DNA of 63,912 bases, filler included, from Hyphochytrium catenoides (taxonomy: Eukaryota > Protista > Hyphochytriomycota), in NCBI GenBank assembly GCA_900088475.1. It is 10 parts of 10 records of this genome, joined end to end, with 100 filler letters (N's around TTAATTAATTAA, not from the genome) between each part and the next. Parts side by side here need not be neighbours in the genome. Positions count along the whole stretch, not along the records: positions 27,775 to 47,192 come from FLMG01002605.1; 9 more parts are not named here. One strand, given 5' to 3'. The notes below the pieces were generated by a model that saw nothing but the letters and a program-made list of their open reading frames with translations, was not told where the DNA came from and made no database searches. This document shows positions 27,368 to 48,915 of the stretch, piece after piece. The stretch's first letter is position 1. Each line of letters opens with the position of its first letter. The position numbers and the translations under genes were made by a program.

Positions 27368-29453
27368 TCGTCTGTCTCTCTCTCTCACTCTCTCTCACTC
27401 TCTCTCTCTCTCCCCTCCATCTTTGCTGGATCTGACTCTCTTCCAAGTGATGCTTGTCTTCGCTGACCTTGGTCTACTTTCTCATTTCTTTCCTCTAGTT
27501 CTCTCTTCCATATGACGAGTGGAACGCGTTCTCTTCTACTTCCAATAAAACCATTAATTTCTGTTCCTTCTCTCCTTCCTCCTTCTCTCAATCTCTTGTC
27601 TCTCTCTCACTCACGCAGTTTTTCTTTTCTTCTCTTTGTCTCTCATTCTCTCCCGCTGGTGGTCGCTCTCCAGCNNNNNNNNNNNNNNNNNNNNNNNNNN
27701 NNNNNNNNNNNNNNNNNNTTAATTAATTAANNNNNNNNNNNNNNNNNNNNNNNNNNNNNNNNNNNNNNNNNNNNCACAAAGAGAGAGACAGAGAGAGAGA
27801 GAAAGAAGAGAGAAAGAGAGATTTTATTTTCCTACACTAGAATTTTTACACACCCTGTCTTTGTTCTTTATACTACAAGAACATCGCCTTCGTTTCCTTG
27901 TCTCCCGTTTCCTAGGACACTACTGTTCTACAACTTTTGGAACAGGAGAACTACCGTTTTACATGGTTTCCTTTCTTTCCTGGCAGACAGAAAATAGGAG
28001 AGAAAGGAGCTACACTGGCCATTAGTTGGCCCGCAAGTCTGTCTCTCCCAGAGCATAGTGCGGAGCATGGCGTGGCCCGTCTGTCCTAGGAAGTGTGTTC
28101 TGCTTCTGGCTTTCTGGTTCTGTTTCCCTCTGGGGTCCGTTCCTTAGATTCCCTCTTTGCTCTCCCTATTTCTCTCTCTCTCTTTTCCTTCCTCTTGCTT
28201 TCTCTCTCTCTCTTTTGACTCTCTTTCTCTCTCTCTCTCTCTCTCTTTCCTCTCTCTCTTTCACCGTAGTCATCTACTACTCTTTTGCTCGCATGACCTT
28301 GTCTGTGGGAGTATCTCTCGCCTCTGCTCTCTTCTTCTGTTTCCTTCTCTGCGCTCTTCTTCTGTTTCCTTCTCTCATCATGGAAAGAGACATAGACTTC
28401 TTTATGGATCTTCTCTGCTTCGTTTCCTGTCGGCGTGTCGTGCATAAAAGAAAGGTGGTTTCGATCATCTAGAATCTCTGGCAACGATGGCTGGTATCCT
28501 CTCCCCAATTTCAACTCATGTTCCTTCCTTGTTTCCCGACGCGTAGAGAGCTCCCGTTCGTTGGTTGGTGTTGACTCTTTCTTTCTTTTGAGAGAAGCAC
28601 TGCTTTCTCTTCTCTCTTTCTGTCTTCTCTCTCGTTCTATCTATCTACCTCTCTATCTATTTCTTACTCTGGGTCACTCTCTCTCTCGCTCGCTCTCTCG
28701 CCCTTTCCTCTCTCTCTCTTTTCGTTGCTCTTTGCTCTTCCCCCCCTCTCTCCTCCCGCTACTATAATCTCTCCCTTTCTTTCTACTCTCTCTCCTCCCG
28801 GTAATTCTCTATCGCTTGTGCGCTCTCTCTCTCTCTCAGAACCCATGCCTGGAGCGTCCTTTTCTCTTCTTGAAAGGAACGGACCTTGTACAAGGTTCCC
28901 CCCCACCCTTTCTAAACAAAAGAGGCGACGCCCAAAAAGAGCCCTTGAGAGAAAGTCAGAGGTGCGAACCTTCGAGGTTCTCTTTCTTTTCTCTCGTCGC
29001 TTCTCCCTCCAAATTTGTTGGAGCCTGCCTTCTCCTTCTCCAGAACAGGAATCGCCAAGAACAAGAAGGGATCTCTACTACGAGGATAATCCTGTCTCCC
29101 TCTCTTTGCCTTTGCTTTTTAGCCTTTTCTCCGGCAAACGTCAGCATCTCTTCCACGTATGTCGCCAGTGTGTCTATTCCATCTCTCTCTCCTCTCCCCT
29201 ATCTCTCTCGCACTCTTTTCTCTCTCTCTTATATAGCACATTAGGTAGAAGGGAGAGAGAAGGAGAGGGAAGAAAGTGAGAGAGAGAGGATGCAAACGTA
29301 GCAAGGCAAGGCCAAGAGCCTTCCCTTCCTCAAGCCTCTTCTCAGATCCATGTCATTTCCCAAGTTCCCTGCTTACGATCAACCAGCAGCTTCATCCCAA
29401 GACAGCGTTTTGTCTATCTTCTTCCTTCTTTTCTAAAACACAGAGAGGAAACG

Positions 29454-30734
29454 ATGAAGACCTTTAGCATCGCTTCCGTTCTTCTTCTTGCCTCTCTCTC
29501 CCAATGCACCTCAGCTGAGCAGAGCGAGACAGAGCCCGTCACTTCCAACCTTCGCGGGCTTCAGTTTGGCTTCGGAGGAAGCAGCGCCATCGCCTCTGGA
29601 GACGCTTTCTCCTCCGGCGGGCTCTTTGGAGGCTCTAGCTCTAGCGCTCTGTCTGCTGCTAACTCTTTCGGCGGTGGACTATTTGGTGGATCTAGCGCTA
29701 ATGCTCTATCTAGTGCCAACTCTATCTCGACGGGTGGACTGTTCGGCGGCGGCTTTTCCTCTGCTAACTCCCTGGCAGACGCTAGCAGCTTCAGCACTGG
29801 CGGTGGCCTCTTCGGACTAGGAGGATCATCTGCCAATGCTTTTGCCTCTTCTGGCGCCAGCTCTCTTGGCGGCTGGGGATCCGGATCTTCCTCTTCCGCT
29901 CAAAGTTTCGCATCTGCCAGCGGTCTAGGCGGCGGCAGTGCCAGCGCGTTTGGCTCTGCATCTGCTGGCAGCGGAGGCCTCTGGGGCGGTTCATACGCAT
30001 CTTCTAACGCTTATGCCCAGGCTGGCGGCTATGGCTTTGGAGGCAGACGCTTCAACCTTCTTCCTCTGTGGGGCTACTCTCTTCCTCCCACATCCCACTG
30101 GTCTCTCCTCTATCAGCGTCCTCCTCTGTCCTTCTTGGATGGCGCGTTCTTCTACAGATCTCATCAGAACTTCCTGGACAATCTGGATGGCATTGGCCAT
30201 CGCACGCAGTGTGTTAACCGCCGCTGTGTGACCATCTCCTATGACAATGGCCGCGTAGACAGGCAGTACCAGTGGGACGATGAGAACGGAGAATATGAGC
30301 AGTACTACGCGACAGACGTCACTGTCAAGCCTGAATCTGAGGCTAACGGAGAGGTTGTTATCAACACGAGGAATGGCTATATGACGCTCTCTCTCCCGTA
30401 TATGGAGCCTGCAAAGACCGTGGAAGACAACAAGGGCCGCCCTGTCCCTGTTGTTCTCCAGGGCGTCATGTTCCCGGAAGAGGGAGGACCGTTCGACTGC
30501 CTCCACTGGGACACGCCGGAACAGTTCAATGGCCTGCCTGGCACTTTGAATGTGGGGAGAGACGAGAAGCACAGACCTCTTCTTGGCTACAAGGTACAGA
30601 ATTTCACTACCCCAGGCTATCACTGTGTGAAGCACGATGATGACTCCAAGCAGATTGCCTTTGCTGACAAGGGAGAGGGAGAGAGATTCTCCGTTGAGCA
30701 CGGAAGCAACAAGGTTGTCAAGTCCACTGAGTAA
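29454..30734 (+). CDS. Secreted Gly/Ser/Ala-rich repeat protein with an unrecognised C-terminal globular domain, intronless
   Basis: 426-aa ORF with a signal peptide (MKTFSIASVLLLASLSQCTSA), NLRGLQ motif, about 8 repeats of the type GGLFGGSSANALSSANS, then ~225 aa of complex sequence. Microsatellite-free and clearly coding-like. Confidence 0.85.
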   Translation: MKTFSIASVLLLASLSQCTSAEQSETEPVTSNLRGLQFGFGGSSAIASGDAFSSGGLFGGSSSSALSAANSFGGGLFGGSSANALSSANSISTGGLFGGGFSSANSLADASSFSTGGGLFGLGGSSANAFASSGASSLGGWGSGSSSSAQSFASASGLGGGSASAFGSASAGSGGLWGGSYASSNAYAQAGGYGFGGRRFNLLPLWGYSLPPTSHWSLLYQRPPLSFLDGAFFYRSHQNFLDNLDGIGHRTQCVNRRCVTISYDNGRVDRQYQWDDENGEYEQYYATDVTVKPESEANGEVVINTRNGYMTLSLPYMEPAKTVEDNKGRPVPVVLQGVMFPEEGGPFDCLHWDTPEQFNGLPGTLNVGRDEKHRPLLGYKVQNFTTPGYHCVKHDDDSKQIAFADKGEGERFSVEHGSNKVVKSTE

Positions 30735-31252
30735 CGCAGTGGAAGAGAGAGAGAGAGAGAGACTCCGGTGCATTATTTATATGTATAGCCTGATTAATAC
30801 TAGTTCTTTGTTACCGAGGTATTCCTTCTCAATCCTGTCGAATCCTTTGCCATATCAGTATATAGAAGTCGAGGAAGAGAGAGAGAGAGAGAGAAAGACG
30901 GTAAAGTTGTCTCTCAATCGCCCGATTTTAAGAGCACAAGAGAAAGAGAGAGAGGCTGGACCTTCTTCTTAGGCTCACAATTCCAACCCCAGAGAGAGAG
31001 AGAGCAAGAAGAGCTACTCGATATAGATATCAGCAAACAAGAGAGAAAAGAGAGAGAGAGAGAGAGAAAGCGCCAATGATGGACGACAAAAGAGGAACGC
31101 TTTGAGCCTCAGGAAATGGCGCAGGGGAAAAGGAATCGTCTCGCTTCTTTCTATTGACAAGCAACCCACATATGTAAAGAGTCTATCGCCTCCACATCCT
31201 AAATAACTGGCATATAACAGGAGTACCTACGAGAATCTGCACTATCTGCTCT

Positions 31253-33742
31253 TCACAATTCAGAATGGTCCACCGATGAGCGGCGATGTAGCTCGTCCAT
31301 GACTCTTCCCAGCGGAGAGCTAGCACCTTCTTCTCGAGGAGGCTTTGGCTCCGAGAGTCTTCTCTCTCTCTCTTCTTCCATCCATTGATCTGCTAGCAGC
31401 TGGTTCTGATGTCTCTCCAGCGCCTGAAAGGGTGGATTGGATGAGTAAGACAATTCAAACAGCCAGCAAAGACTACTCGCTCCTGTGGGATGCTCGCTCT
31501 TATCTCTCGTTGCAGTGTCTTCTGTCTGTCTGTCTGTCTCTCTCTCCCTCTTTCTCTTCTCTCTGTTTGCCTTCTCTTCCTTACCTGGTCCTCCTCCTCT
31601 CGTCTGACTTGCTGGATCCTCATCTGCTGCTCCGCATCCTCCGCTTCGTCCGCCAGCTTNNNNNNNNNNNNNNNNNNNNNNNNNNNNNNNNNNNNNNNNN
31701 NNNNNNNNNNNATTCTTCTGGACTGCTCAGCGTCTTCCGCCTGTCTCGACAAATATTGGTCCCAACCGCGATCGAGGTCAATCGAGGGTTATGGGAGGAA
31801 GCACAGAGCCGGAATTGAAAGGGAAAGAGAGAGGAAAAGTAGAGGTCAGAAGATAGAGTGAGAAAGAAAGAGCGAAGATAGACAGAGAAAGAGAGAACAA
31901 AAGACAGAGACAGGTAATAGGAGAGAAAAGGCACTGAAAGAGAGAGAAAGAAAGAGAGAGAAGAGTGAGATATTCAGACAGGCAGACGGGAGAATGGTCA
32001 GGTCAACGGCAAAAGGAATCGAGAGCTTGAACCTCGAAAGCCAGGGACAAAAGAGAGAAGATGAAGTCCTCTCCTACCTCCATAGAGTAAAGAATATTCC
32101 TCTCTCTCTCCTCAGCAGCTTCTCTCTCCAATAGCTGCTCTTCTAAGATTCGACGCTGCTGCTCCTCGTCCTAGCGAGAGGAAGACGTCAGAATGAATGG
32201 AGGAGACCATCTTCCACTGTTTCTCTTCTTTCAGTTAACATCCTCTGTCCGTCACTCGGTTTCTCTCTCTCTCTCTCTTCTGTGCACCGCTGGCTCATAA
32301 CCTAGCTCTCCACAATATCTCTCATCTCTCTCCTGCGGCTTCGCTTTTACCGTTGCGTACATCCTTTCCCTCAGCACATTTTCTTGCACCAAAATGCCCC
32401 GCCACACTCTTTCTCCCTTATCTTCATCGGCCAGTCTTTTCCTCGTATCTTTCTCCCCTCTCCCTCTTCTTATACTCTCTCTTTTCTCTTTTCTTCCTCT
32501 CTTTTCCCCTCTCGTCTCTATCTCTCACTTGTTTCCCTCTCCTATCCCTTTATCTATCTATCTCTCCCTTCACTTCGCTCAATCTTTCTCTCTCACTCTC
32601 TCTCCACCTGGGCTTTCTCTTTATTTACTGTCCGATCACTCACCTCGACTGCAGACATCTTTCTCCTTAGCGGCTCTCTCCTCTCTCTGTCATCTTCGCT
32701 CTCGATCTGAGAGGATTCCAATTCAGCGGCCTGCAGCTCCTCAGCTGCTCTGTTATGACGAGACATATCCTCCACTCTCTCCTGAAGAGAGAGAGAAGAC
32801 TGACCACCTGAGGAAGACAGCTGCAGGTCAGAAAAGAGAGAGAGAGAAGGGGCACCTGGAGCCTGTGATGAGGAAGAGAGAGGCGCAAGAGAGAGCCCCC
32901 CAAAGAGAGAGGCTTCCTGCTTTTCGGACGGTGAGGGAGCTGAAGGAGCAAGAGAGAGACCGCCAAAAAGAGAACTATCTTGCTTGGTTTGGGATGGGGA
33001 AGAGCCTGAAGGGGAGAGAGAAACGCTGCCAAAGAGAGGCTTCTCTCTCTCTGTTCCTTCTGTTATGGCTCCTGGCGTCTCTTGGGCTTGACCTGCAGAA
33101 GGAGAGAGAGATGATTCTCCGTCAGCTTTCTCCTCTTCTACATCTGGAGTCGCGTGTGTGGAGTCCTTTGCCGGGAGAAGAGAGAGACCACCAAAGAGTG
33201 AGGCACCGTCTCCCGCTATCTCTTCATTTTGCGCTACATTGGACTCTTTCTCTTCTTGCCCCTCTCCTGTCTGTTCTAAAGCTGAGTCTTCCGGTTGTTC
33301 AGGCAAAAAGCTCTGACTTGTGGAAGAGAGAGAGAGGCCGCCAAAGAGAGAACTTCCTCCTCTCTCCTCTTTTGCGTCCACCTTCCCAATAGGCTCCACC
33401 TCTCTCCTGCCTATGTCCAAGCTTTCGGCCGTGTAAGTTGCAGGAGAGAGAACGTGCACGTGAGGCGGAGGAGGAGGCGGAGGAGAAGGTCCTACGGTCG
33501 GGGAAGAGAGAGGAACAGCGGAGGAATGGGGAGAGGGAGAGAGCATCTCCTCTCCTTCGTGTCTATCCTTTCGTCTCTCTCTCTCTTCTTTCAAAGCATC
33601 CAAATGACTTCGCAACTCATCCACTTCAGCTTCCAGTTCCGCGGCTGTGTCATAGTCTTCCACCTCCGCCGCTTGCTCCATCTGTCAGGGAAGAGAGAGA
33701 GCGACCATACAATACCACATCCCATTCCATTAAGAGAGAGAG

Positions 33743-33780
<38 letters not shown>

Positions 33781-34859
33781 GAAGAAAGAGACAGACAGTG
33801 TGTGTGAGAGACTGAGAGGGAGAGGAGGCGACGAGTAGAGAAGGCACATAAGATGGGAGAACGGATACGAAGCAGGAGGATCCTTTTGACCAACACGTGA
33901 GAGAGGCCGCAGCGATGGTAAATCAAGTTTAAGGCACTGAGGCAGTAGAGAGAGAGAGAGAGATACAGAGAGAGAGTGAGAAAGAAGGAGAGAAAGAGAG
34001 AGAGAGTGAGAGAGAAAGAAGGAGAGAAAGAGAGAGAGAGTGAGAGAGAGCGAGAGAGAGGAGAGAAAGACAGACCCTTTTACCTGCAATTCTAAATCTT
34101 CGACATGTCTCTCCAGTTCTTCTATCTCCTTTTCTAACTCCTCTGAAGACATAACTTCCTCTCCGTCATCCTCCGCTGTCTCTTCTCTCTCCTCATCCTC
34201 TCGGCTGCCAAGAGAGAAGGAAAGGCACATAGAAAGTGAGTGACCTTTTTGGTCAGGAACAGTAAGGAGATAGAGAAAAGAGACCGATACTGAGGAGACT
34301 GAAGGGGAGAAGCATCGGGAAAACAAGCAGGAGCGCAAAGGAGCCAATCTTCACAAGAAGGAAAGAGAAAAGACAGAAAGTGAAGAGAAGAGAAAAGGGA
34401 GAAGAGAGAAAGAGTATATTACAGAGAATAGAAAGGGGTTAGGATGGTGGAGATAAGAAGAAGAGAGAGAGCAAAGGCTGTGCCCGATGCCTCAGACCTA
34501 GGAGAGTACTCCTGAGATGTTTCCACCCTTTCCACAGCATCCTCTTTCTTCTCTGTCTCGTGGTTTGTGTCAGAAGAGAGGGGAGCTGGGGAGGTGTCCT
34601 CCTCTACCGTCTCCACTCTTTCTCCTCGATCTTTCGTGTCTCTCTCTCCTCCCCGAGAGCGCGGTGGTTCGGGAGGTCTGGGCATTTCTTCTTCTTCAGA
34701 GTCGTCTTCTGGAGAAGACGCTCCTTCTGGCCCATCATCTACTTCTAACCCTGGAGAGAATAGAACGTTGCGGCGAGAGAGAGAGAGAGAGAGAAGGTGC
34801 GGGGGAGAGTCAGGGCGGCGTAAAAGACGAAAGGGAAAGAGAGAAGACATGGGTAGGGA

Positions 34860-34892
<33 letters not shown>

Positions 34893-35308
34893 TGAGGGAC
34901 AGAGAGAGAGACTTCAAGCAAAGACAGAGGAAGAAGAAGTGAGAGAGACCGGAGAAAGGAAACGAAAGAGCTCTACAGAGTATATACTATGCGACCTAAT
35001 AACGTTGCAGACTCCTACCATGTTTCTTCTGCAAGTCTTCTATGGCTCGTGTGCAGCTTGAGAGCTCTGACTCCAGGAGCATAATGGCAGCGGAGTGAAA
35101 GCCAGATGACTCCTTTCTCTCTCTCTCTCCTGCTGCGTCTCCCTCCTGGTGGGCAGCTGCCTGTCTCTTGATCCTTCTAATGGCTCGCTTGATCCCACCA
35201 ATGTCTTCTTTCAGAAGAGAGAGCTTCCTCAGATCAAGGCCTTTCTCTATCTCCTTCAGCTCTGCTTCCTTCTCATCCTATAACAAACGTAATGAGAGAA
35301 ACGAGAGA

Positions 35309-35354
<46 letters not shown>

Positions 35355-35782
35355 CAGGGACTAGGAGAAAGAGTAGAAATTGGGGAAGAAGAGAGAAGGA
35401 GAACAAGACAGGAGAGACAACTGTAGAGAGAGAGAGAGAAAAAACACGCTATTTTATACGACCGCCAAAGCATAAAGTGGAACGGAACGGTAGGAAGAGC
35501 GAGAGAAGGCAAAAGCGAAGAAGAGAAAAGAGGGACCAAGAGAGGCGCACCAGAACTTCCTTCTTCTCTTGGAGTTCCTCCTCCAGGTCCTTGAGCATCA
35601 AAGAAGAGGCCTCCAGCTCTGTCTGCGCCTCTTCTTGCTGCGCCTGCAGAGTCTTCAGCTCCTTGCTGAGCCGAGCCGCCTCCTTGTAGTTCTTAGCGCC
35701 GGCAGCGATCTGGGGGTAGGAGCGAGAGCAGATGTGGGAACACACCGTGAGAAGCAAAAGCAAGGGAAAGGAGGCAAGAGGC

Positions 35783-35814
<32 letters not shown>

Positions 35815-38800
35815 GCGTGCCACCGAGCGGAAGAAGCACATTAGCAGACAACAAGGCAGAGGCTACGGAACCAAAATAAGAATCAAAGACAAGGAGCTAT
35901 CGAGTTGCCGAGACAAGCCATCCGATCCTTGGGAATCCGAGAGAGAGACACACACAAAAACAGAGAGAGAGAGAAATACAGAGACAGAGTGAGAGAAAGA
36001 GAGAGAGAGAAAGAGAGAGAGTTAGAGGGCAAGACAAAGAAATTTGTACTTTTTTCTCCTCCTCGAGTTTCGGCAGCTTTGTCTCAATGGTGAGAATAAG
36101 GTTCCTGGCAGCATTTCCTGTCTCCTGCGCCTGTCTCTGCCGATGCTCGATCTGCAGCTTTGACTGCTGCGCGGCGATGACTGTCTGCTTTACTGCCGCC
36201 AGAGCTTTGTTCTCCTCGCGAGAGAGAGACACAGCCTTCTGCCGCTTCTCTTCCCTGTGGAGAGAAAAGAAAGGTAAGAATAAGGAGAGACATGTAACCT
36301 TCATGGAGCGAGAAGAAGACAGCAAATGGAAACTACGACGAGAAAAGACGAGACGACTAGACAGGAAAGCATACAGAGACTTCTTTCCTTGGTGATGGGT
36401 AGACGTTAGGATATACAGCCCAAAACTTGAGGAGGGAAGAGAAAAGAAGAGAAAGAGACAGAGAAAGAGGAGTAGAGGAAGATCAACGTCAGCAATAAAT
36501 AGAGACAGAGAAGGGGAAACATGACGGAGATAAGGAAGAGAGAGAGACAGAGAAAGAAGAGAACGGCGAACGAGGGAAGTGCCACAGGAAACACGCGTTA
36601 CCTGTCTATGAGACTCTTCTGCAGTATAGAGGCCGACCTCAGCTCCATCTCCACCTCGAAGATTCTCCTCTGGCAGAAATATTTCTCGTCTTGATGTTGC
36701 TCCAGCCGTTGAGACAGATCACGACGAAGGTCCTCCAGCATCTCAACCTGGACAAATAGGGAGAGAGACAGGAAGAGTGAGCAGGAGCGAAAGAGAAAGA
36801 GAGAGAAGATAGCGAGGGAGTTTAATAGACAGAAGAAGAAGCAGGTTGATTGAGCTCATCTTGCATGAGGATCTCTCTTTGAACAAGTAGGGAAGGAGAG
36901 AGAGACATGGGGCAGAAGGACCAAACGCCTGCAAGCAAAAAGGAGAAGCGAACCCAAACAAACGATAGGAGCCGTGGGGAGAAGGTTTTGATGCGTAGAC
37001 GGCGTGAAAGAGATAAGAATAGCAGAAAGGAGAGCCCAAGGAGAGAGAAAGTGGCAAAAGAGAAACGTTTAGGGTGAGACGAAAGGACAAAAGACAGAGT
37101 TCTAGAGAGCAGGGAACGAAGACGGGAAGCAGAAGCCGCTAACCTCGGAGACGCTCTCCGCCTCTGCTTTTCTCAGTCCCTCTCTTCTGCTCTTCAACCT
37201 GGCCAACTGCCTCCCATACTTGCTCCTAACCTCGTCTATCTGTGTCTCGTAAACATCGATCTCTGCCTGATATCCCTTTCTCTCTGCCTCTTTCTCTCTC
37301 AGTCTCCTCTCCAGCTCCCGTATCTCTTCTTCCACTTCGTCTCGCTTCGAGACTAGAGCGTCTCTCTCCTCGATCACGTCCTTGCACTGAATTCAGAGGA
37401 AGCGTTAGCATCTGGGCAAGAAGGACCACGAAGTGGGAGAAGAGAAAGCACAGGGATGCGGAAGAGGGGAAAGCAGAGAAAGAAACGTCGCCAAAAATGA
37501 AATGCACGCACATGAAAGCTCAGAGAGATAAATTAAGGAGAGATCAGTACGACGAGTGTTTCCAGGAGAAGCGAGGATAAGCAAGCAAAGACTTAGAAAG
37601 AGAGGGAGCAGACCAAGAGACGCGGAAAAGACGGAGAGAGATGAAGGAATGTGTGGAGAAGAGAGAGAGAGAAGAAGAGAGAGACAGTGGCAGTGTGTGA
37701 ACCTGGTCCTTTATCGCGTCATCGATGGACGCTTGTTCCTCATCCAGATGCTTTTTGTCCAGCTCGACGTGCTTGACCATCAGCTGGATACGTTCCTCCT
37801 CTGCATTGATGCGACTCCTCTCCGCCTTCTCGTAGGTAGAAATCTAACGATAGCAGAGATTACAAGACCAAAGAGAGAGAGTTTATATGTGTGCGTGAAA
37901 GAGAAAGAGAAAGAGAGAGTGAAAGAGAGAGAGAGAAAGAGAGAGAGAGGGAGAGGGAGAGGGAGAGAGAGAGAGAGAAACGAGAGGAAGAAAAGAGAGA
38001 GAGAGTGTGTGTTCATGTAGAGTCACGAACACTGGTATTTAGGTATTTATCTATCCACCTCCGTTCATCAGCTTTTTTTCTCTTCGATCCAATGGACTCT
38101 AGTCTCACTTCCTCTCTCTCTGGAATCTCTCCCTTCTCTCTGTTTGTTCCTCGGCCTCCCTTTCACCTCTTTCATCTTTTAACACGAACAACTTTGTTTG
38201 ACTCTTCTCCTGCTCAGACTCACCTCTTCTTCACTGGCCTTCAACTCCTCTTCCTGCTCATCTCTGAACTGTTTTAGCTTCTCGACCGTGAGAGAAGTGC
38301 CATCCAGTTGCTGTTTGAATGCTTTCACTTTCTCTTCTTCGATCTTCTCTGCATCTTCGTCACATCTTCGAAGCTCTGTCTCTGTCAGCGTTATTCGGTT
38401 CTTTAGAGAGTTGATGGAAAGATTGAGAGACTCTGCAAGCTCAAAGTCTTCATTGACTGAAGCAGCTTCTTGTTCTTTCTCTTTCTCAACAATATCGGCT
38501 CGCGTAGCCACAAGCTGCTGCTCCAGCATGGCTGAGAAGGAAGGGAGGAGTGAGGACAGACCAAGGGATAACGAGACGAGAAGAGAGAGAGAGAAAGATT
38601 GAAAACAAGAGAGAGAGACAGCCAGTTCAGGCGGATGTCATGACCGCAGTCAAGATGATGAAAATGAGAAGGACTAAGGACATTGTGCGAAGCAGAGTGT
38701 GCCGAAGAACGATGGCGAGGATCAAAGAAGCATCTTATCGAAATGACCAGCGAAGTGAGGAGAGAGGCGCACAGAGAGAAGAGGAAGCTTAGCAAGTCAG

Positions 38801-41800
38801 CATCACGAAGGGCCAACAGCCAGCTAAACAGGGGCAAAGAGGAAAGCACAGACGCATCGAAGCTTAGGAAGAGAGAAAGGAGAGAAGACGACCTACCTCT
38901 TCGGATTGCGACACTAGCTTCCTCTGAAATTAGCTGGTCCATTCGACCACGAAATGATGCGGCTGACATATGGAACTCTCCAATCGTCTGTGAGTGGCAG
39001 TGGAAGGGGAGACAAAAAAAGGTGTAAGAAGAAGAGAGGAGGAGAGAGTGCCTGACAACCCAAGCGCTCTTCCAAAAAGAGATGGCAAGGGTTCAATTCA
39101 AAAGGAAGCTCAAGTGCTGTCTCTCTCTAAAGATAAGGAGTCGAGGCAGGAGATGCGGCAGCGAGGTAGTGAGGAAATGATAGGAAGACAGATATTGTTG
39201 AAATGAAGAGAAAGAGAAGACAGGAATGGAAGAGGGAGAGAGAGGGCAGGAAAAAGAGTGGGAGGTAGAGAGAGGACATCAAGAAGCTGCAGCCCAAATA
39301 GTTATCACGCTTACCCTGGATAGCCTTGAATCTGGTCCATTATCCTGGGGAAGGGGAGACTCNNNNNNNNNNNNNNNNNNNNNNNNNNNNNNNNNNNNNN
39401 NNNNNNNNNNNNNNNNNNNNNNNNNNNNNNNNNNNNNNNNNNNNNNNNNNNNNNNNNNNNNNNNNNNNNNNNNNNNNNTAGGTCTGAGGTCATCGACATA
39501 CTGCCAGGGTTGGATACGCAAGTGAGTCACAAACAGGGGGAAGGAAGAAGTCAGAATAAAGGACAAAATGCTTAGAGAGCCGGTGTCTTATGTTAGAAAG
39601 GGTGGAATGTGTCTGCGAGAGTGAGAGAAAGAAAGGAGAGAAGAGGGAGAGAAAGGAGGTCGCTAGTGGAAGAGGATGATCGGTACCACAGCAACAAGCG
39701 AAAGAGTGCAAGTGGATGAGAAAGAGAGGCGATGCCTCAAAGAGAAAAGATTTACAGACCTCGTAGCAGGGGCGGCAGGAGTAGAAGCAGGAGGAGCTGC
39801 GGCAGGTGCAGTATGGACGGTAAGGCCCGAGAGAAGGCCGCCTGGAGTCTCTCTCACTGCCTGAGAGTGAAGCGTCAGTCCTGCCAGCACAGAGCCTCCG
39901 GTCCTTGCGCCTGTAGAGGAGAGAGACGGAGCTGTAGTAGAGGAAGAAGGAGGTCCATAGTGTCCCTTCGAGGCTGAAGGCAATAGTTCTTCCTCATCCA
40001 ACTCTCCTTGTTGCAGCTTTGCAGCCTAGAGAGATAAAGACAGCAGCGGTCACGCAAGCACCCAAGTAGAAAGGAGGAAGAGGAAGAGAAGTGGAAATTG
40101 TTCGTTAGTCAGATCGAAGAAAGAAAAAGCGCGAGAGAGAGAGAGAAAGAGAGACAAAAAGAAGACGAAGCAATACTGATAAAGAATGCAAGCGAGAGGA
40201 ACGATTGCTGCGGGAGGCGAGAGGACTCGCTATGATCAAATGTCGAGAGACAGAGAAGGACTAGCTAGGAGAGGCAGAAAGAGAGAGGCTAGGGCATTAT
40301 TAGACCAAGGAGCGGAATCTAAATAAAGGAAAGGAAAGCGCGTTGGCTCGGCGACGAAGGTAGCTCTTGTTCTGTCATAACTTTGAAAACAAATATTGCG
40401 GGGAGCCTTTGAAGAGAAAGAAGAGTGAAGAGAGAGAGAGAAGAGAGATGACAGTGACCAGTTTACATATGCTCCTCTCCTCAGACATTCGGCTTACCGT
40501 TTCTTCACTAAGTTGCCTGCCAAATCCAGGCTTAACGCCTCGCCTTTTCCTTCTCACACCTGCAGCTCTCAGTCCGGCATCTCCGCCTTCTCTTCCTACT
40601 CTTCCACCGGCTGGAGACCCACCAAAGCTCGGTCCATGGCTCCCGCCCACGACTGAGCTCGGAGGGGAAGGAGCAGTGCTGACATCATGAGAAGAGAGGG
40701 GAAGAGAAGCGGGGAGAGAGGAAGAAGCAGGAGCAACATGAGGTGGAGGCTCCACTCGGAGAGACATTCCGCCGAAAAGATTCCCGCCTCCAGCAGGCTG
40801 GGCAGTGGGAGGAGGAGTGGGACCTTGAGAGAGAGAAGAACCGGCGGATGCAGGAGGAGTCGGGTCTGCTGCTCTCAATGACATGCCGCCGAACAGGTCC
40901 CCGCCGCCTCCACCAGAAGTAAAGCTTGAGAGCGATTGAGCTGCAGGCGATAACAGAAGAAGGGATCACAGTGAGAAACAACCAACGGAGGGAGAGACGG
41001 GGAGATGAGCCATTTAGTGAGATCACCAAGCCTCGAAAAGGGTGAGAGAAGCAGAGAGAGAGAGAAAGAGAGAGAGAGAGACGGACAAAGGCAAAGGGAC
41101 GGAGCCTAGAGCGACAGGTTCCTAAAGTCAAAGAGGAGGATAAAGAAAATCAAAGACAAAGAGGAGGAGGAGGAGAGAGAGAGCGGGGGGAGAGAGACAG
41201 AGACAGAGAGAGACAGGGGGAAGGAGAGAGGGGAATGGGAGAGATTTGGACAGAGAGAGCAGCACGCATTACTGGGGAACAGCATGTCTGATAGAGTGCG
41301 TAAGCGGCCCTAGTAGCGGGACAGGAATAACGAGAGAGTGACGAGGAAAGATGAGAGAACAGAACGTAAGCCAAAACTCTAGAAGGGAGAGAGAAGCGGC
41401 AGTTCCTTACGTGGCGGGTGAGAGGCTTCAGGCATCGATCGCCTCTGAATGGAGGCGGTGCCGGCTCCCCAAGAGGACTGTGGAGCCGAAGCCACTGCAC
41501 GAAGAAGGTGATAACGATATTATGCGAAAAAAGAGTACGAGGCAGAGGGAGGACGAGAGAGAAAGATAAGGCGAAGAGTCCAAATGATTAGTCTTTCACA
41601 AGGTAACCGAGAGAGAGAAGCCTTAGATGGGTAAAACGCCACTTTTGGAAAGAGGAGGCGCGAGAGAGAGAGAGAGAGAGTGAGAGAGAGAAAGAGTGTG
41701 AGAGAGAGATTAGCAAGGAGAGGCGTTTCTAAGGGTAGCGAGGCCGTGAGCGGATGTGGCAGTTATTCAGAGAGAGAGAGTGAGGAGAAGAAAGAGGAGG

Positions 41801-42152
41801 AAAAAAGAAGAGAAACCGCGAGCGAAGAGAGATTGAACACTGTCTTGCCACCTGTAGGTGCTGAACTTCGCTTTGGGGCGCCATATCCGCCTGCTGGGGA
41901 CCCTCCTGAAGAGGATTGACCGCCTCCTGCACCTCCTGAGACTAGCGCCGGGGAGAGATTGAAGAAGCCTCCTCCTCCGCCAGCTCCACCTCCACTACCT
42001 GCGCCACCCTCTGCCTTGGCTGCAGCTCCATTAGAGACTGAACTGACTGAGGAGGCTGCGGATGAGATCTGGGAAGAGGAGATGCCCACGGGAGCCGGAG
42101 GCTTGGACTGAGTTGACGCATTGTCTTTCTTCTTCTTGAAGAAATAGTTCAT
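31253..42152 (-). CDS. Large multi-exon coiled-coil protein with three UVR (UvrB/C)-like motifs and repeated LFGG[ML]SL motifs
   Basis: ATG at 42152 (MNYFFKKKK). UVR-like segments: EQEAASVNEDFELAESLNLSINSLK, KIAAGAKNYKEAARLSKELKTL, MEQAAEVEDYDTAAELEAEVDELR. Long E/K/R heptad exons at 34000-38530. Last exon ends ...RRSSVDHSEL* at 31253. Not every internal junction was verified, and N gaps fall inside the gene. Confidence 0.75.
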
Positions 42153-44050
42153 CCTTTTCTTTCTAAAAGTGATCGGCACTGAGACCCCCCAGAGAAAAAG
42201 ACAGGGAGGATATTCACTCAGGGACGGAGTGAGTGACGGGAAAGCAAAGCAAGAGACAGAGAGTGAGCGGCCTCCTCCTTACCCTCCTCAGCAGCAAGGG
42301 CTGAGCTGGCAGGCAGGAGAGAGGAGGAGGACGAGGAGCAAAGGTCCCGCACAGTCGAGGCAAGCTGTGGATCAACTTTAGATGCTGCCTTCTGCAGTCT
42401 TCAGGCAGCAACTCTACAATGAGCTTCTAACTCTATAGCAAGTCATCCGATGGAGACGAACAATAATGTGGGACAAGAGAGAGAAAGAGAGAGAGAGAGA
42501 GAGNNNNNNNNNNNNNNNNNNNNNNNNNNNNNNNNNNNNNNNNNNNNGAGAGAGAGAAAAGGAGAGAGAGAGAGAGAGGTGCTTGATCCGTGATGTGCTG
42601 TGGAGGTGCAATAGACATTTGCATTGAGAAATCATATTGCTTCATCTGAGACCACTCCACGAGACAGACCTTGGAGAATTTGAGATGGAGACCTTGAATG
42701 AATGTCAGCCAAGAGACAGAGTGGTGAGAGGCAGAGGCGAGAGATGAGATCCATCTCTATGTCTCCAAGCCTGGCTCCTGGGGGAGGCCAGCGCGATCCG
42801 CTCCAAGGGGTCGGCTCAATAGTAGATTGTCTCCTTTTGTAAAAGGGCCATTATTATAATGAGGCGTTTAGTTGTCGTTGAGGTCCCGGTTCAGAGGTTA
42901 TCTATAGAAATGGTGTCCGCCCGGTCCTGACAGTGCCTGACAGAGCTCAAGCTGCAGATCTGCGGATGAAGCTCTCAGAGAGACTTCTGAAGCTTGTCCT
43001 TCGATCTCAATCGGTGCTAGCCATCGCCAGACCATAGAGCTAACCTTAAGCAGCCGTCTTCAAGTGCCTAGAGGCAGACGGATGTGTAAAGCAGGTGGTT
43101 CAAATGACTCTCTGCTTTCGAGAAATAATGCGTCGTGCATGGGGGTAAAATGTAGGCTCTCCTAGCAAGAACCAGCCCACAGGAGGGGGTCGCACATAGA
43201 CGCCTTTCTCTATCGTGATACCGCCATACGCCACTTGAGCCTAAAAGGTGAGAAGCAGTGAGAGTTATATGGAAAGAATAGCTTGAGGACCTTGAGTGCA
43301 TCTGGTGCTACAGCTGATAGTCAGCATACGACCAAGCATCAGCGGATGATGGGCTTCAAGCTCAATCTTCTGGTTGCCGTAAGGCGAAGCCGTCATCGCC
43401 GATCACGTTCTAACCTCACATGCCCATTCAGCTCGACCATTACCTGTTCCTTGTGCTACTTAGCGATCTTAAAGCTCCCAAAGCTTGATCCTCTAGAACG
43501 TCCAGCACTAGCCCTTGGGCTTCTCTCTACAGAGCTAGTTCCTATGTGACAGATAGACCAGCTTTCCCAGAGGCAAGCAAGATACAGGGAAGATCACACT
43601 TTCATTTATTCATTGGTGGCGGAAGGAGAAAGGAACGAGGCTGGGATGACTCTTCTGACTGTTAGTCCGATGGGGAAAAATAGCTTCCTGTCTAGATAGG
43701 GCTGTGAGCGAGAGACGGAAAGAAGGAATCTTAGAAAAGGGAAATAGCTGATCCCAGGCTCTGAACTGACAGGGATTCTTCCAAGCCAGAGACGCAAAAG
43801 AAAGAGTAATCAGCCACTTTTTAGCAGTCCAGTCCTTGACTTCTCCCTCCATCTAGCCTTACGCTGTGTCTTTTTGAGAGTAAACTGCCATAAATAACAT
43901 TAGTGATGCTTTCAGGCAGAGTTTGCCATTCACTCTAGCCCGCTCGGTTCTTGTTGCGCCGAAGTTGAGGTTACTCTTCTTGCAAAAATGTTGCTTGTGC
44001 ACTTGCTGTGTCTTCTCTGGTCTACTCTTTCCTCATCGTCTCTCTTTCTT

Positions 44051-45958
<1,908 letters not shown>

Positions 45959-48915
45959 CTAGAGACCGCAGGTGATGGAGGCAAGACAGAAAGACACAAA
46001 ATTGAAGAAAGCTCGGACACCGCGGGATAAAAAATATGCGGTAGATGGCTTTGAACTCAGTAAGAGAGGAACAGATAGGCTCTGATGTCTCTAGGTCCGT
46101 ACATATCAAGCAGGAGGGCGGCTCTCTTCTGTGCGTCAGCGCGTTCAGCGGTGCAAAGACTGGCCCTCCATGGGGCTCAAAAAGGGAAGAACAACTGCAG
46201 TTGGCTATATAAGAGGCTCTCTAGAAGGCCAGCTGCAAATCTTTCTACCACGTACAGTCGAAGTGATTCGTGGGCCCTTCCCTTAGAGCAGTACTCCGAG
46301 GAGATAAATGAGGCATCCAAGCGTCGTGTGCCCTCTCTTCTTCTCCTATCTATATCCAGATCTGTGCCTATATAGGTTGTCCTGCTGCTTGTCCTCTCAT
46401 CTCTCTAGCGCCTCGAGTGCATGGACGTCAAGATCTTCAGAAATCCGTTCCAGACGTCTGCATCTCTCCTTTCCCCAAACACTGCCGTGGGAAAACGGCA
46501 AGGTCAAGGGGGAGGACTGGCCTTACTCTTTCACTACATTTTACACTGGAAATCTTCTGTTAATTGCTATTCTTGCCAATATAAGACAAATGGTCAAGGG
46601 GGATGACTGACACATCCTCAGATTTCAAGCAGTTATAATTGACAGCGAAGTTCCAAGTTTATTGATTGCCAATATCTCTATATTTTGCCTGTGAAATATC
46701 CTTTCACGAACCATCGCCTGATGGGAACTGGGAGTCAAGCGCTCAGCGGCGGCGTCTGAGGGCAGGGCAGGGCAGGGATGGGAAGGAAGAGGTCGGGCTC
46801 CTGGGCAGCGGCGAGGGACAGTGAAGACCGAGAAGAGAGACAGAAGAGACAGAAAGAAAGAGAGAGATCACAAGGTCAAGCAGCCACGAGAGAGAGGGAA
46901 AAGGAGAGGGAAGGAGAGGGAGAGAGAGAGCGAAGTTGAAGAGGGCGATCGGGGATCGTTAAGATCACGACGACTGCGGAGCTTGGGACCGAGACGGTGA
47001 CGGACAGCAAGCAGAAGAGGAGTGGAAAGCACTGAGAGAGTGTACCTGTAGGAGAGGAAGTTAGGGGAAGAAGAGAGAAGGAGAGACGCTTCTGAAGGGT
47101 TTGCGGGGATGCAGGAAAGTCATCAGGAGACGGCAGCCGTGGAGTCCGGAGGCAGCGGCGCCGCACCGCAGAAAGTCAATGATCGACTCAAGNNNNNNNN
47201 NNNNNNNNNNNNNNNNNNNNNNNNNNNNNNNNNNNNTTAATTAATTAANNNNNNNNNNNNNNNNNNNNNNNNNNNNNNNNNNNNNNNNNNNNCTCCTCGC
47301 TGCCAGACTGTCTTTGCCCTTTCTTGCTCTGGCTCTCGTACTCCTCCGTAGTCAGTCCTCCACCGCTTCATACCATATCTGTCTCTGATGCTGGTTCTGA
47401 CCTTCCCATCTCCGGTACCCCGTGATTCATTTCTTCGCCTGTCATAGAAGCAGCAGCAGCAAGCGCCCATCATCCTCACGTCTTGATCAATCTCTTGGGT
47501 CCAGGATCTCAAGTCGGTGGGTGGGAGATAAGAGTTGTTACATCAACCAACTTCCTTAACCGTTTCTACAGAAGACTGGTAGCTGTGCGGAGTGGGTGGG
47601 ATGTCTAGTTGATGATCCGTTACAAACCTGCTCGCATCAGAAATAAGATGTGCTCCTCCTCCACTTCCCAGCAGCAGTGCAGTGCAGTAGTAGTTCTATT
47701 CATTGTTCTCTCTTCTTCCGCTCTCTTCGCTGCCTCTCGTTCTGGCCTCAACACTCCTTCTTCTTCCTCTCATGTCTCTCTTTCTCTCAAATGTTTTCTT
47801 GATGGTCTTGAATAACCTCGTCCTTGCCGTCCACCCCTGAAACTCCATCTCTTCTTCGGGGGTTGTTGGGATTGTTGTTGTGTTCTTTGTGCTGAGTTCT
47901 TGTTGATTCTGATCTTCATTCTCGGTCTGGCTTCATCTGTCCTCGCCGCATAAGATCAGTCAGCTTAAAGCTGCCTTTGTCTAATAAGTCAGGTTTTCAG
48001 CAGACTAATGGTCGGTCCTGGTTGTTCCTAGTAGCTACGACGCCGCCGTCATTATTAGAGGCTTGAGAAGCTTCACCACTAGTGTTATACTTTTAGAACG
48101 AACTGGAATGATGATGATTTAGGAGTCTGCTTGGCCATTATATCTTCCCGATCTAGAACTGAAAGTATGTACGTCGTCCACGAGTGCCGCCCACTCTATA
48201 CAATATTCCGTGTGAGAACAAGAAGCCGCCAACGAAGGGAGGGACGAGCACGTAGTATTACTGTGAGGCTGCGCTTTGTCGTTATAATAGCGGCAGATGT
48301 GAAAGTAAACCTGCAGATCCGACAAACAGAAAATGGGACAACCCTATTACCACTCTTGACTCTTTTAGAGTTGCATCCCCCTAATAGCAAAAATAATAAC
48401 GTAGTAGTAAGTACTCCTAGTTGTTTTAATGGAGAACTCCATTTGGCGAAAAGCCACGCCGCGGGCTGCTGAGCTAAACAAGAGCCCCAGCACTAGCAAC
48501 AAGACAGACATCACTATAGCTTGCTCCTACAACTTTCTTGCGCGCCCGACAATGATGAGAAGGAGTCTAGGAGGAGTGAGGACGGCAGCAGGCAGTTATA
48601 ATTACTACTAGTAGCAGTAGTGCTCATTGTATTTTAGTCCTCCGCCATCCCAATTTATTATGGCCCCCGCGGGACTACTGGCGCTGCTGCTGCTGAAAGA
48701 ACGGGTCCTTCTGCAACAAATCCTTGCATTAACCGAGAACCATCCTCAATAATGATGGTAGCAGTAGCAGCACCAGCAGAAGAAGAAATTGACAACCAGG
48801 CATGGTGATGCTAAGAAGGAATGCGATGAAGTTGATCAAAAAAGGCACCAAATCCTTGATGTTTTTCTGTTGGGCGTAAACAAGGGGTTAGCGGTTCTTC
48901 TTTCAGAAAGGTTTG

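Follow-up and report, generated by a model that had tools for sequence, protein, structure and literature searches.

A predicted Hyphochytrium catenoides protein with arrays of a tepsin-type LFGG(L/M)SL motif around a UVR-like helical core: a candidate multivalent AP-4 scaffold

Introduction

AP-4 is an ancient, clathrin-independent adaptor, the loss of which leads to severe human neurological disease. Very few accessory proteins of the AP-4 coat are known and, because no scaffold protein is known for it, the scaffold role is unfilled (PMC11064669). One protein that binds AP-4 is tepsin, which contacts the beta4 appendage through the motif LFxG[M/L]x[L/V], located in a disordered region (PMC13335578). 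Tepsin has one beta4 motif, a separate epsilon-ear motif, and folded ENTH and VHS-like domains. The tepsin of Toxoplasma lacks a VHS/ENTH-like domain, and tepsin and AP-4 co-occur across eukaryotes, alveolates included (PMC12517565). Here, we describe a predicted gene of Hyphochytrium catenoides in a stretch of genomic DNA of 63,912 nucleotides, referred to as “the window.” We analyzed the ~19-kb piece of the window at positions 27775-47192 (FLMG01002605.1), which is eukaryotic DNA with ~50% G+C, short exons, and CT-rich introns; all positions given are those of the window. In a hand-built model, the gene occupies 32593-42152 on the minus strand, with 16 exons and ~1,370-1,375 codons (ATG at 42152, stop codon at 32595-32593). 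Its predicted product shares with tepsin a beta4-appendage motif in disordered sequence, but differs in having ten copies of it (six exact, four degenerate) and a long helical core of UVR type, and in lacking any ENTH or VHS domain that we could find.

In Eps15 and AP180, ear-binding motifs are arrayed at intervals of 20-50 residues in disordered regions, and Eps15 adds coiled-coil oligomerization; together, the two features give avidity for adaptor appendages. By analogy only, the predicted protein has the same combination of motif arrays in disordered regions with a putative oligomerizing region. The analogy has limits: the Eps15/AP180 motifs are of the DPF, DLL, and FxDxF types and are directed at AP-2, and the EH and ANTH domains are missing from the protein described here. 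A second point of comparison is DISC1, in which a disordered N-terminus rich in Ser and Gly is combined with a helical core and, on a low-complexity tether, a helical binding module at the C-terminus (PMC8527833, PMC13273187). The DISC1 core contains three dispersed UVR-like repeats and forms a tetramer via head-to-head hairpins, and DISC1 homologues are found in plants, Dictyostelium, choanoflagellates, and trypanosomes (PMC8527833, PMC13273187).

Copies of the LFGG(L/M)SL motif

A six-frame scan of positions 27775-47192 for LF.G[ML].[LV] found exactly six matches, all on the minus strand and in one frame, and none elsewhere in the piece. The initial annotation had reported six tepsin-type motifs in this gene, and the scan recovers all of them; the consensus to which it had compared them, LFxG[M/L]x[L/V], is indeed the published one for the beta4 appendage (PMC13335578). 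Two exact copies are in exon 2 (DLFGGMSL at 40899-40876 and NLFGGMSL at 40782-40759), and four copies of SLFGGLSL are in exon 15 (33351-33328, 33201-33178, 32973-32950, and 32910-32887). Residue shuffles of each exon give an expectation of 0.0004-0.0005 matches per exon, versus the 2 and 4 observed. Four degenerate variants that had also been listed are all present on the same strand: SVLAGLTL (39893-39870) and GLLSGLTV (39839-39816) in exon 3, and PLFGSVSL (33039-33016) and SLFSDLQL (32841-32818) in exon 15. In total, ~10 copies, 20-55 residues apart, are distributed over two disordered arms.

The copies fit each position of LFxG[M/L]x[L/V], and four of them also fit the optional leading Ser. 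Patterns for the clathrin box, DPF/W, NPF, FxDxF, WxxF, and the tepsin epsilon-ear motif have no match in the arms. For the epsilon appendage, the consensus is reportedly S[AV]F[SA]FLN, described by Mattera et al. in 2015; it has no match in any exon. A literature search on the peptide strings returned nothing relevant.

DLFGGMSL and NLFGGMSL are 39 codons apart and encode the same peptide with five silent differences. These N-terminal copies are written in codons that are not CT-rich (CTG TTC GGC GGC ATG TCA TTG), and the C-terminal copies read TCT CTC TTT GGN GGN CTC TCT CTY. Since one peptide is encoded by different codons in the N- and C-terminal copies, the constraint is on the peptide. 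Tandem Repeats Finder detected no tandem DNA repeat in exon 15.

Motif conservation in the only relative detected

Domain, PDB, HMMER, and fold analyses were all run exon by exon, and this scope applies to every homology result that follows. A word search with exon 15 found a single relative, a 357-residue open reading frame (ORF; P0001) that is 85% identical and lies on a 1.4-kb genomic contig (L001, a Logan contig from run SRR32051696). An exhaustive HMMER search with an exon 15 profile against 1.84 billion representatives likewise found P0001 only. Word searches with stretches of exons 6 and 2 found no relative, nor did a metagenome locus scan, and exact-product look-ups gave no match. The lineage seems to be very poorly sampled in public protein sets. 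The motifs, for which a test of conservation in orthologues had been suggested, are kept in the one 85%-identical relative, and no distant orthologue was found by these searches.

All four perfect SLFGGLSL copies persist in the relative, where one reads SFFGGLSL, and the degenerate PLFGSVSL is a perfect SLFGGLSL there. Across the four perfect copies, 26 codons are identical, 5 differ silently, and 1 carries a replacement; the corresponding counts for the rest of the disordered linker are 143, 20, and 42. The difference between perfect copies and linker has a Fisher p value of 0.014, and of 0.06 when all six C-terminal copies are included. The linker around the motifs evolves close to neutrally. 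As judged from the predicted coding sequence, the LFGG(L/M)SL motif is under selection.

Protein architecture and the UVR-like core

The predicted protein is divided into compositionally distinct parts. The N-terminal ~360 residues (exons 1-3) comprise 18% Ser, 18% Gly, 13% Ala, and 11% Pro; exons 5-12 (~515 residues) are rich in Glu, Leu, Lys, and Arg; and the insert encoded by exons 13-14 comprises 29% Glu and 11% Asp. For exon 15, AlphaFold2 gives a confident helix at residues 12-45, ~250 residues with a predicted local distance difference test score (pLDDT) <50, and helices at residues 299-325 and 329-361. All six C-terminal motif copies fall within residues 48-294 of this exon, in the region modeled with pLDDT <50. 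The motifs were originally said to occupy disordered arms, and both arms are consistent with this, the C-terminal one by its pLDDT and the N-terminal one by its Ser/Gly/Ala/Pro-rich composition. Two short features were observed in the arms: a Pro7 stretch (33460-33480, minus strand) in the C-terminal linker, and RRKRR, a basic cluster resembling a nuclear localization signal (NLS), in exon 2. Both may be further docking sites.

Exon 6 modeled alone with AlphaFold2, as a single sequence and a single chain, is a single helix (residues 2-101, pLDDT 95). Pfam and PDB searches on exons 5-12 returned coiled-coil-type noise alone, as did PDB sequence searches with six exons. The signature AA-x4-5-[FY]-x2-A-x2-L, a pattern set after the data had been seen, is found in exon 6 and at the starts of exons 11 and 15, giving three occurrences versus 0.0045 expected from shuffles. 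The hairpin-loop residues of the three signatures are F..A, Y..A, and Y..A. UVR-like motif 1 (38487-38398) has the Pfam UVR domain (PF02151) as its top hit (E=0.0021, 18.2 bits, profile positions 6-35 of 36). The signature of motif 2 (35706-35668) belongs to a motif that spans the exon 10/11 junction; the exon 11 part, which was the part searched, has no Pfam UVR hit. Motif 3 is split by an intron, with its first helix at the end of exons 13-14 and its second half at the start of exon 15 (33681-33634); a partial match again places Pfam UVR first (E=0.003, 17.7 bits). Three UVR-like motifs in the helical core had been proposed from the outset, and what we find is three signatures, two of them with sub-threshold Pfam UVR hits. 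The tepsin ENTH and VHS domains, which were said to be lacking, gave no hit in any exon or in the upstream minus-strand stretches as far as the neighboring phosphatase gene.

The UVR domain of UvrB/UvrC is thus the best Pfam match for two segments, with a signature that is found three times, although the context is a eukaryotic scaffold rather than DNA repair, and the single-exon AlphaFold2 model has no hairpin. Among eukaryotic proteins, the likeness is to the DISC1 family: UVR-like repeats with an aromatic residue and then Ala three positions on, set in a helical core; a Ser/Gly-rich N-terminus; and C-terminal helices (residues 299-361 of exon 15) behind a ~250-residue disordered linker. The protein described here differs in being larger and in having an acidic insert. 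In the ESM Atlas, exons 6 and 11 share their two nearest eukaryotic clusters, one being a plant protein of 520 residues and the other a fungal “UVR domain-containing protein” of 797 residues. Scores to the plant and fungal UVR clusters are 0.79-0.88 and that of exon 6 to DISC1 is 0.75, all being <0.9. Exon-by-exon Pfam, PDB, and HMMER searches found no homology to DISC1. Because these searches did not detect DISC1, we treat the likeness as a resemblance rather than membership. A literature search found no link of DISC1 with AP-4, and neither LFxG motifs nor AP-4 binding are known for DISC1. The overall shape had been pictured as a rod with motif clusters at its ends; this picture of a simple rod is not supported, as UVR hairpins in the DISC1 family build a compact tetramer instead (PMC13273187).

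A possible AP-4 scaffold and its alternatives

Read from its predicted sequence, the product is a real scaffold protein that has UVR-type motifs in its core and carries a multivalent short motif under selection. We propose the following mechanism. The ~640-residue charged helical core, with its three UVR-type helix-loop-helix signatures, would most likely self-associate into a dimer or tetramer, like the UVR pairs of DISC1. Two long disordered arms would project from this core, carrying ~10 copies of [S/D/N]-L-F-G-G-[L/M]-S-L, and each copy would dock onto one folded partner domain with low affinity. Since an oligomer would display dozens of copies, binding would occur by avidity. The tepsin-type LFxG[M/L]x[L/V] is the only described motif class that is matched exactly, which would make the beta4 appendage the partner. 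In that case, AP-4 on membranes would be clustered or cross-linked by the protein, following the logic of Eps15 and AP180 for AP-2. This AP-4 reading is mechanistically coherent, because an array of ear-binding peptides on an oligomerizing helical core is an Eps15-type design. We infer the oligomerization, the identity of the partner, and the role in AP-4 traffic. A multivalent scaffold for the AP-4 beta4 appendage is tentatively our best explanation, and the beta4 ear the best candidate partner, at a confidence that falls short of even.

If this reading is correct, the gene offers a direct hypothesis on the clustering or tethering of AP-4 coats in at least one lineage. With the beta4 motif repeated about tenfold on an oligomeric core, the protein would also be a useful probe of the beta4 ear, binding it with high avidity. 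Should the partner be something other than AP-4, the finding is instead a short linear motif that is clean, under selection, and so far undescribed, with a receptor to be sought. In addition, the protein would be a motif-bearing member of the poorly understood non-animal, DISC1-like UVR scaffolds. A more specific form of the proposal, in which the protein is a tetrameric hub of the DISC1 family with arms of beta4-ear motif arrays serving as a multivalent AP-4 scaffold or tether, is doubtful; were it true, it would suggest that organizing adaptor-coated carriers is an ancestral job of DISC1-type hubs.

Several points count against a multivalent AP-4 scaffold with a UVR-type core. AP-4 binding is proposed from a match to a short pattern, and the motif class in question was defined on tepsin alone. 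Nothing in the 19-kb piece shows that the host has AP-4 or tepsin. No distant orthologue that might show conservation of the motifs turned up in the word, HMMER, or metagenome searches. The Pfam UVR scores of 18.2 and 17.7 bits fall below the gathering threshold for this family, which is 21.5 bits, and the exon 6 model is a straight helix rather than the hairpin that would be predicted for a UVR domain. The N-terminal exons, which carry two of the exact copies, are predicted from splice-site logic. Lastly, the codons of the C-terminal copies are CT-rich, and the genome is full of CT microsatellites.

Alternatives differ in whether they change the partner, the function of the motif, or the gene itself. 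A partner other than AP-4 is nearly as likely, i.e., possible but still improbable in absolute terms. On this account, the scaffold is the same, the tepsin match is convergent, and LFGG(L/M)SL docks onto another adaptor or coat appendage, a lineage-specific domain, or the protein’s own core. The motif is clearly selected, yet its tie to AP-4 is a pattern match, and DISC1-type hubs bind many unrelated clients through disordered or terminal regions (PMC13273187). FGGL/FGGM also resembles the core of the gamma-ear/GAE motif, although a gamma-ear pattern matches these peptides only when Gly is added at the third position. In the gamma-ear/GAE consensus, acidic residues directly precede Phe and one of [DEAP] follows Gly. 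The copies have neither: they read S/D/N-L-F-G-G-L/M, with no acidic residue adjacent to Phe and Gly at +2. Among described motif classes, the beta4 class alone fits all seven positions. The other alternatives are minor. A protein resembling FG-nucleoporins or other phase-separating proteins, possibly nuclear, would have LFGG “stickers” like GLFG/SLFG repeats beside a Nup58/Nup62-type coiled coil, and there are nine FG dipeptides in the disordered arms on either side of a coiled coil, an NLS-like cluster (RRKRR), and noise-level coiled-coil hits of exon 8 to Nsp1/Nup62. Such a protein would, however, be expected to have tens of FG units in a polar, low-charge domain together with a nucleoporin-specific domain, and we found ~10 units, built on a rigid 8-mer that is conserved well beyond FG, with linkers rich in Glu, Asp, and Lys, unlike those of GLFG domains. 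Nucleoporins do not feature UVR motifs, and the Nsp1_C hit (E=0.22) is one of 32 equally weak coiled-coil families; we regard this as the least probable of the alternatives.

Somewhat less remote, but still unlikely, is that the motifs are a by-product of low-complexity DNA, in which Ser-Leu codons derived from (TC)n were duplicated around a GGNGGN core and the peptide has no specific function. The CT codons of the C-terminal copies fit this account, as do the CT microsatellites in almost all introns, the GGLFGG repeats of a neighboring secreted protein, and the almost neutral evolution of the linker around the motifs. It is harder to reconcile with the excess of silent over replacement changes inside the copies (5 versus 1), where Gly and Leu codons vary silently, or with the N-terminal copies, which encode the same peptide in non-CT codons; moreover, exon 15 has no detected tandem DNA repeat, and the flanks of the copies are unrelated to one another. 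An error at the 5′ end of the gene model, e.g., a start at ATG 40884 or elsewhere, motifs at one end only, or two genes taken for one, is given slightly less credence than the low-complexity account. Weak coding scores in exons 1-3, a model built there from splice logic, the assembly gap at 39363-39478, and the failure of a word search to find any relative of the exon 2 stretch all leave room for it. Against this, the duplication of the full DLFGGMSL peptide, part of which lies upstream of that ATG, as NLFGGMSL would be unexpected in untranslated sequence, the phases close with strong splice sites, and the introns are clearly non-coding by score.

The gene model

All introns of the hand-built model are of the GT-AG type, and every junction is phase-consistent. 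Codon scores are positive for exons and -0.7 to -1.1 for introns; exons 1-3 are weakly positive and have a composition very different from that of the other exons. Every (AG)n/(CT)n array detected by Tandem Repeats Finder falls in a model intron. The last exon aligns to the contig of the relative at 89.5% nucleotide identity, versus 64% for the adjoining upstream intron and 73% downstream, and this higher identity in the exon than in its flanks supports it.

Exon 1 (41852-42152) encodes a Gly/Ser/Ala-rich disordered N-terminus starting with MNYFFKKKK; its donor is uncertain, and it has no Pfam match. Exon 1b (41411-41494; 84 nt, phase 1 to phase 1) is predicted only, with a strong acceptor and a GTAAGG donor, and keeps the phase required by exon 2. 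Exon 2 (40498-40940) and exon 3 (39756-40025, with an alternative donor at 39760) are disordered; the former contains DLFGGMSL, NLFGGMSL, and RRKRR, and the latter SVLAGLTL and GLLSGLTV. An uncertain mini-exon of 30 nt (39315-39344), with a ccccag acceptor and a GTAAGC donor, would keep phase 0. Exons 1, 1b, 2, and 3 and the mini-exon are predicted from splice logic alone. The helical core begins with exon 5 (38897-38987), the phase-1 end of which fits the phase-1 start of exon 6 (38224-38531), the exon that encodes the long helix and UVR-like motif 1. Exons 7-12 (37843-37703, 37386-37144, 36747-36602, 36254-36050, 35709-35551, and 35277-35019) encode the charged helical/coiled-coil core. Exons 13-14 (34750-34498 and 34204-34084) encode the acidic disordered insert, which is followed by the first of the two helices of UVR-like motif 3. 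Exon 15 (32593-33681; 362 codons) encodes the motif array in its disordered linker and two C-terminal helices (32787-32599). All of these exons are on the minus strand.

An assembly gap (39363-39478) lies in intron-like DNA between the end of exon 3 (39756) and the start of exon 5 (38987), and no motif-bearing exon touches it. The phase-0 chain from exon 3 through the optional mini-exon (39344-39315) to exon 5 requires no gap sequence. An acceptor-like cag|TATGTCG at 39491, near the gap, could open a small exon running into the gap, and continuity and frame across 39363-39478 are therefore provisional. A phase-2 route through the gap region was rejected; it meets a stop codon in exon 5. An extension of exon 1 to 41817 was likewise rejected, being phase-incompatible with exon 2. 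We also rejected ATG 40884, inside the first motif, as the start codon, because DLFGGMSL is duplicated as NLFGGMSL 39 codons on, which is unexpected in untranslated sequence.

Near the end of exon 1 are two similar minus-strand peptides ~40 codons apart, GFFNLSPAL (41965-41942) and TVFNLSSLA (41841-41818), the second of which sits just past the chosen exon 1 donor at 41852. The pair either is due to chance or reflects a longer, alternative exon 1, the phase of which would be unfit for exon 2. Further upstream, the minus-strand stretch 42284-42400 has no ATG and ends in a strong GTAAGG donor, and an acceptor-like tctcag lies near 42187. This is probably a non-coding 5′ exon of the same gene followed by an intron in the 5′ untranslated region.

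The surrounding locus

Tandem Repeats Finder places CT/AG dinucleotide microsatellites in nearly all introns. There are three assembly gaps in the piece (31660-31711, 39363-39478, and 42504-42547). The gap at 42504-42547 is directly bordered by CT repeats and that at 39363-39478 by CT-rich intron-like DNA, and CT repeats may lie behind the breaks in the assembly at these gaps. An Rfam search of the piece gave no match.

On the plus strand, 29454-30734 is a single-exon ORF of 426 residues with a signal-peptide-like start (MKTFSIASVLLLASL), followed by a Gly/Ser/Ala-rich region with repeated GGLFGG and then a ~190-residue C-terminal part containing Cys; Pfam assigned no family to this ORF. The presence of LFGG in a secreted low-complexity ORF is a caution that the peptide belongs to the low-complexity vocabulary of this genome. 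On the minus strand, upstream of the predicted scaffold gene, a multi-exon gene at 44054-45958 encodes a phosphatase of the PFA-DSP/Siw14 type, with Pfam Y_phosphatase2 (PF03162) matched in three separate exons at E values from 4e-19 to 4e-3.

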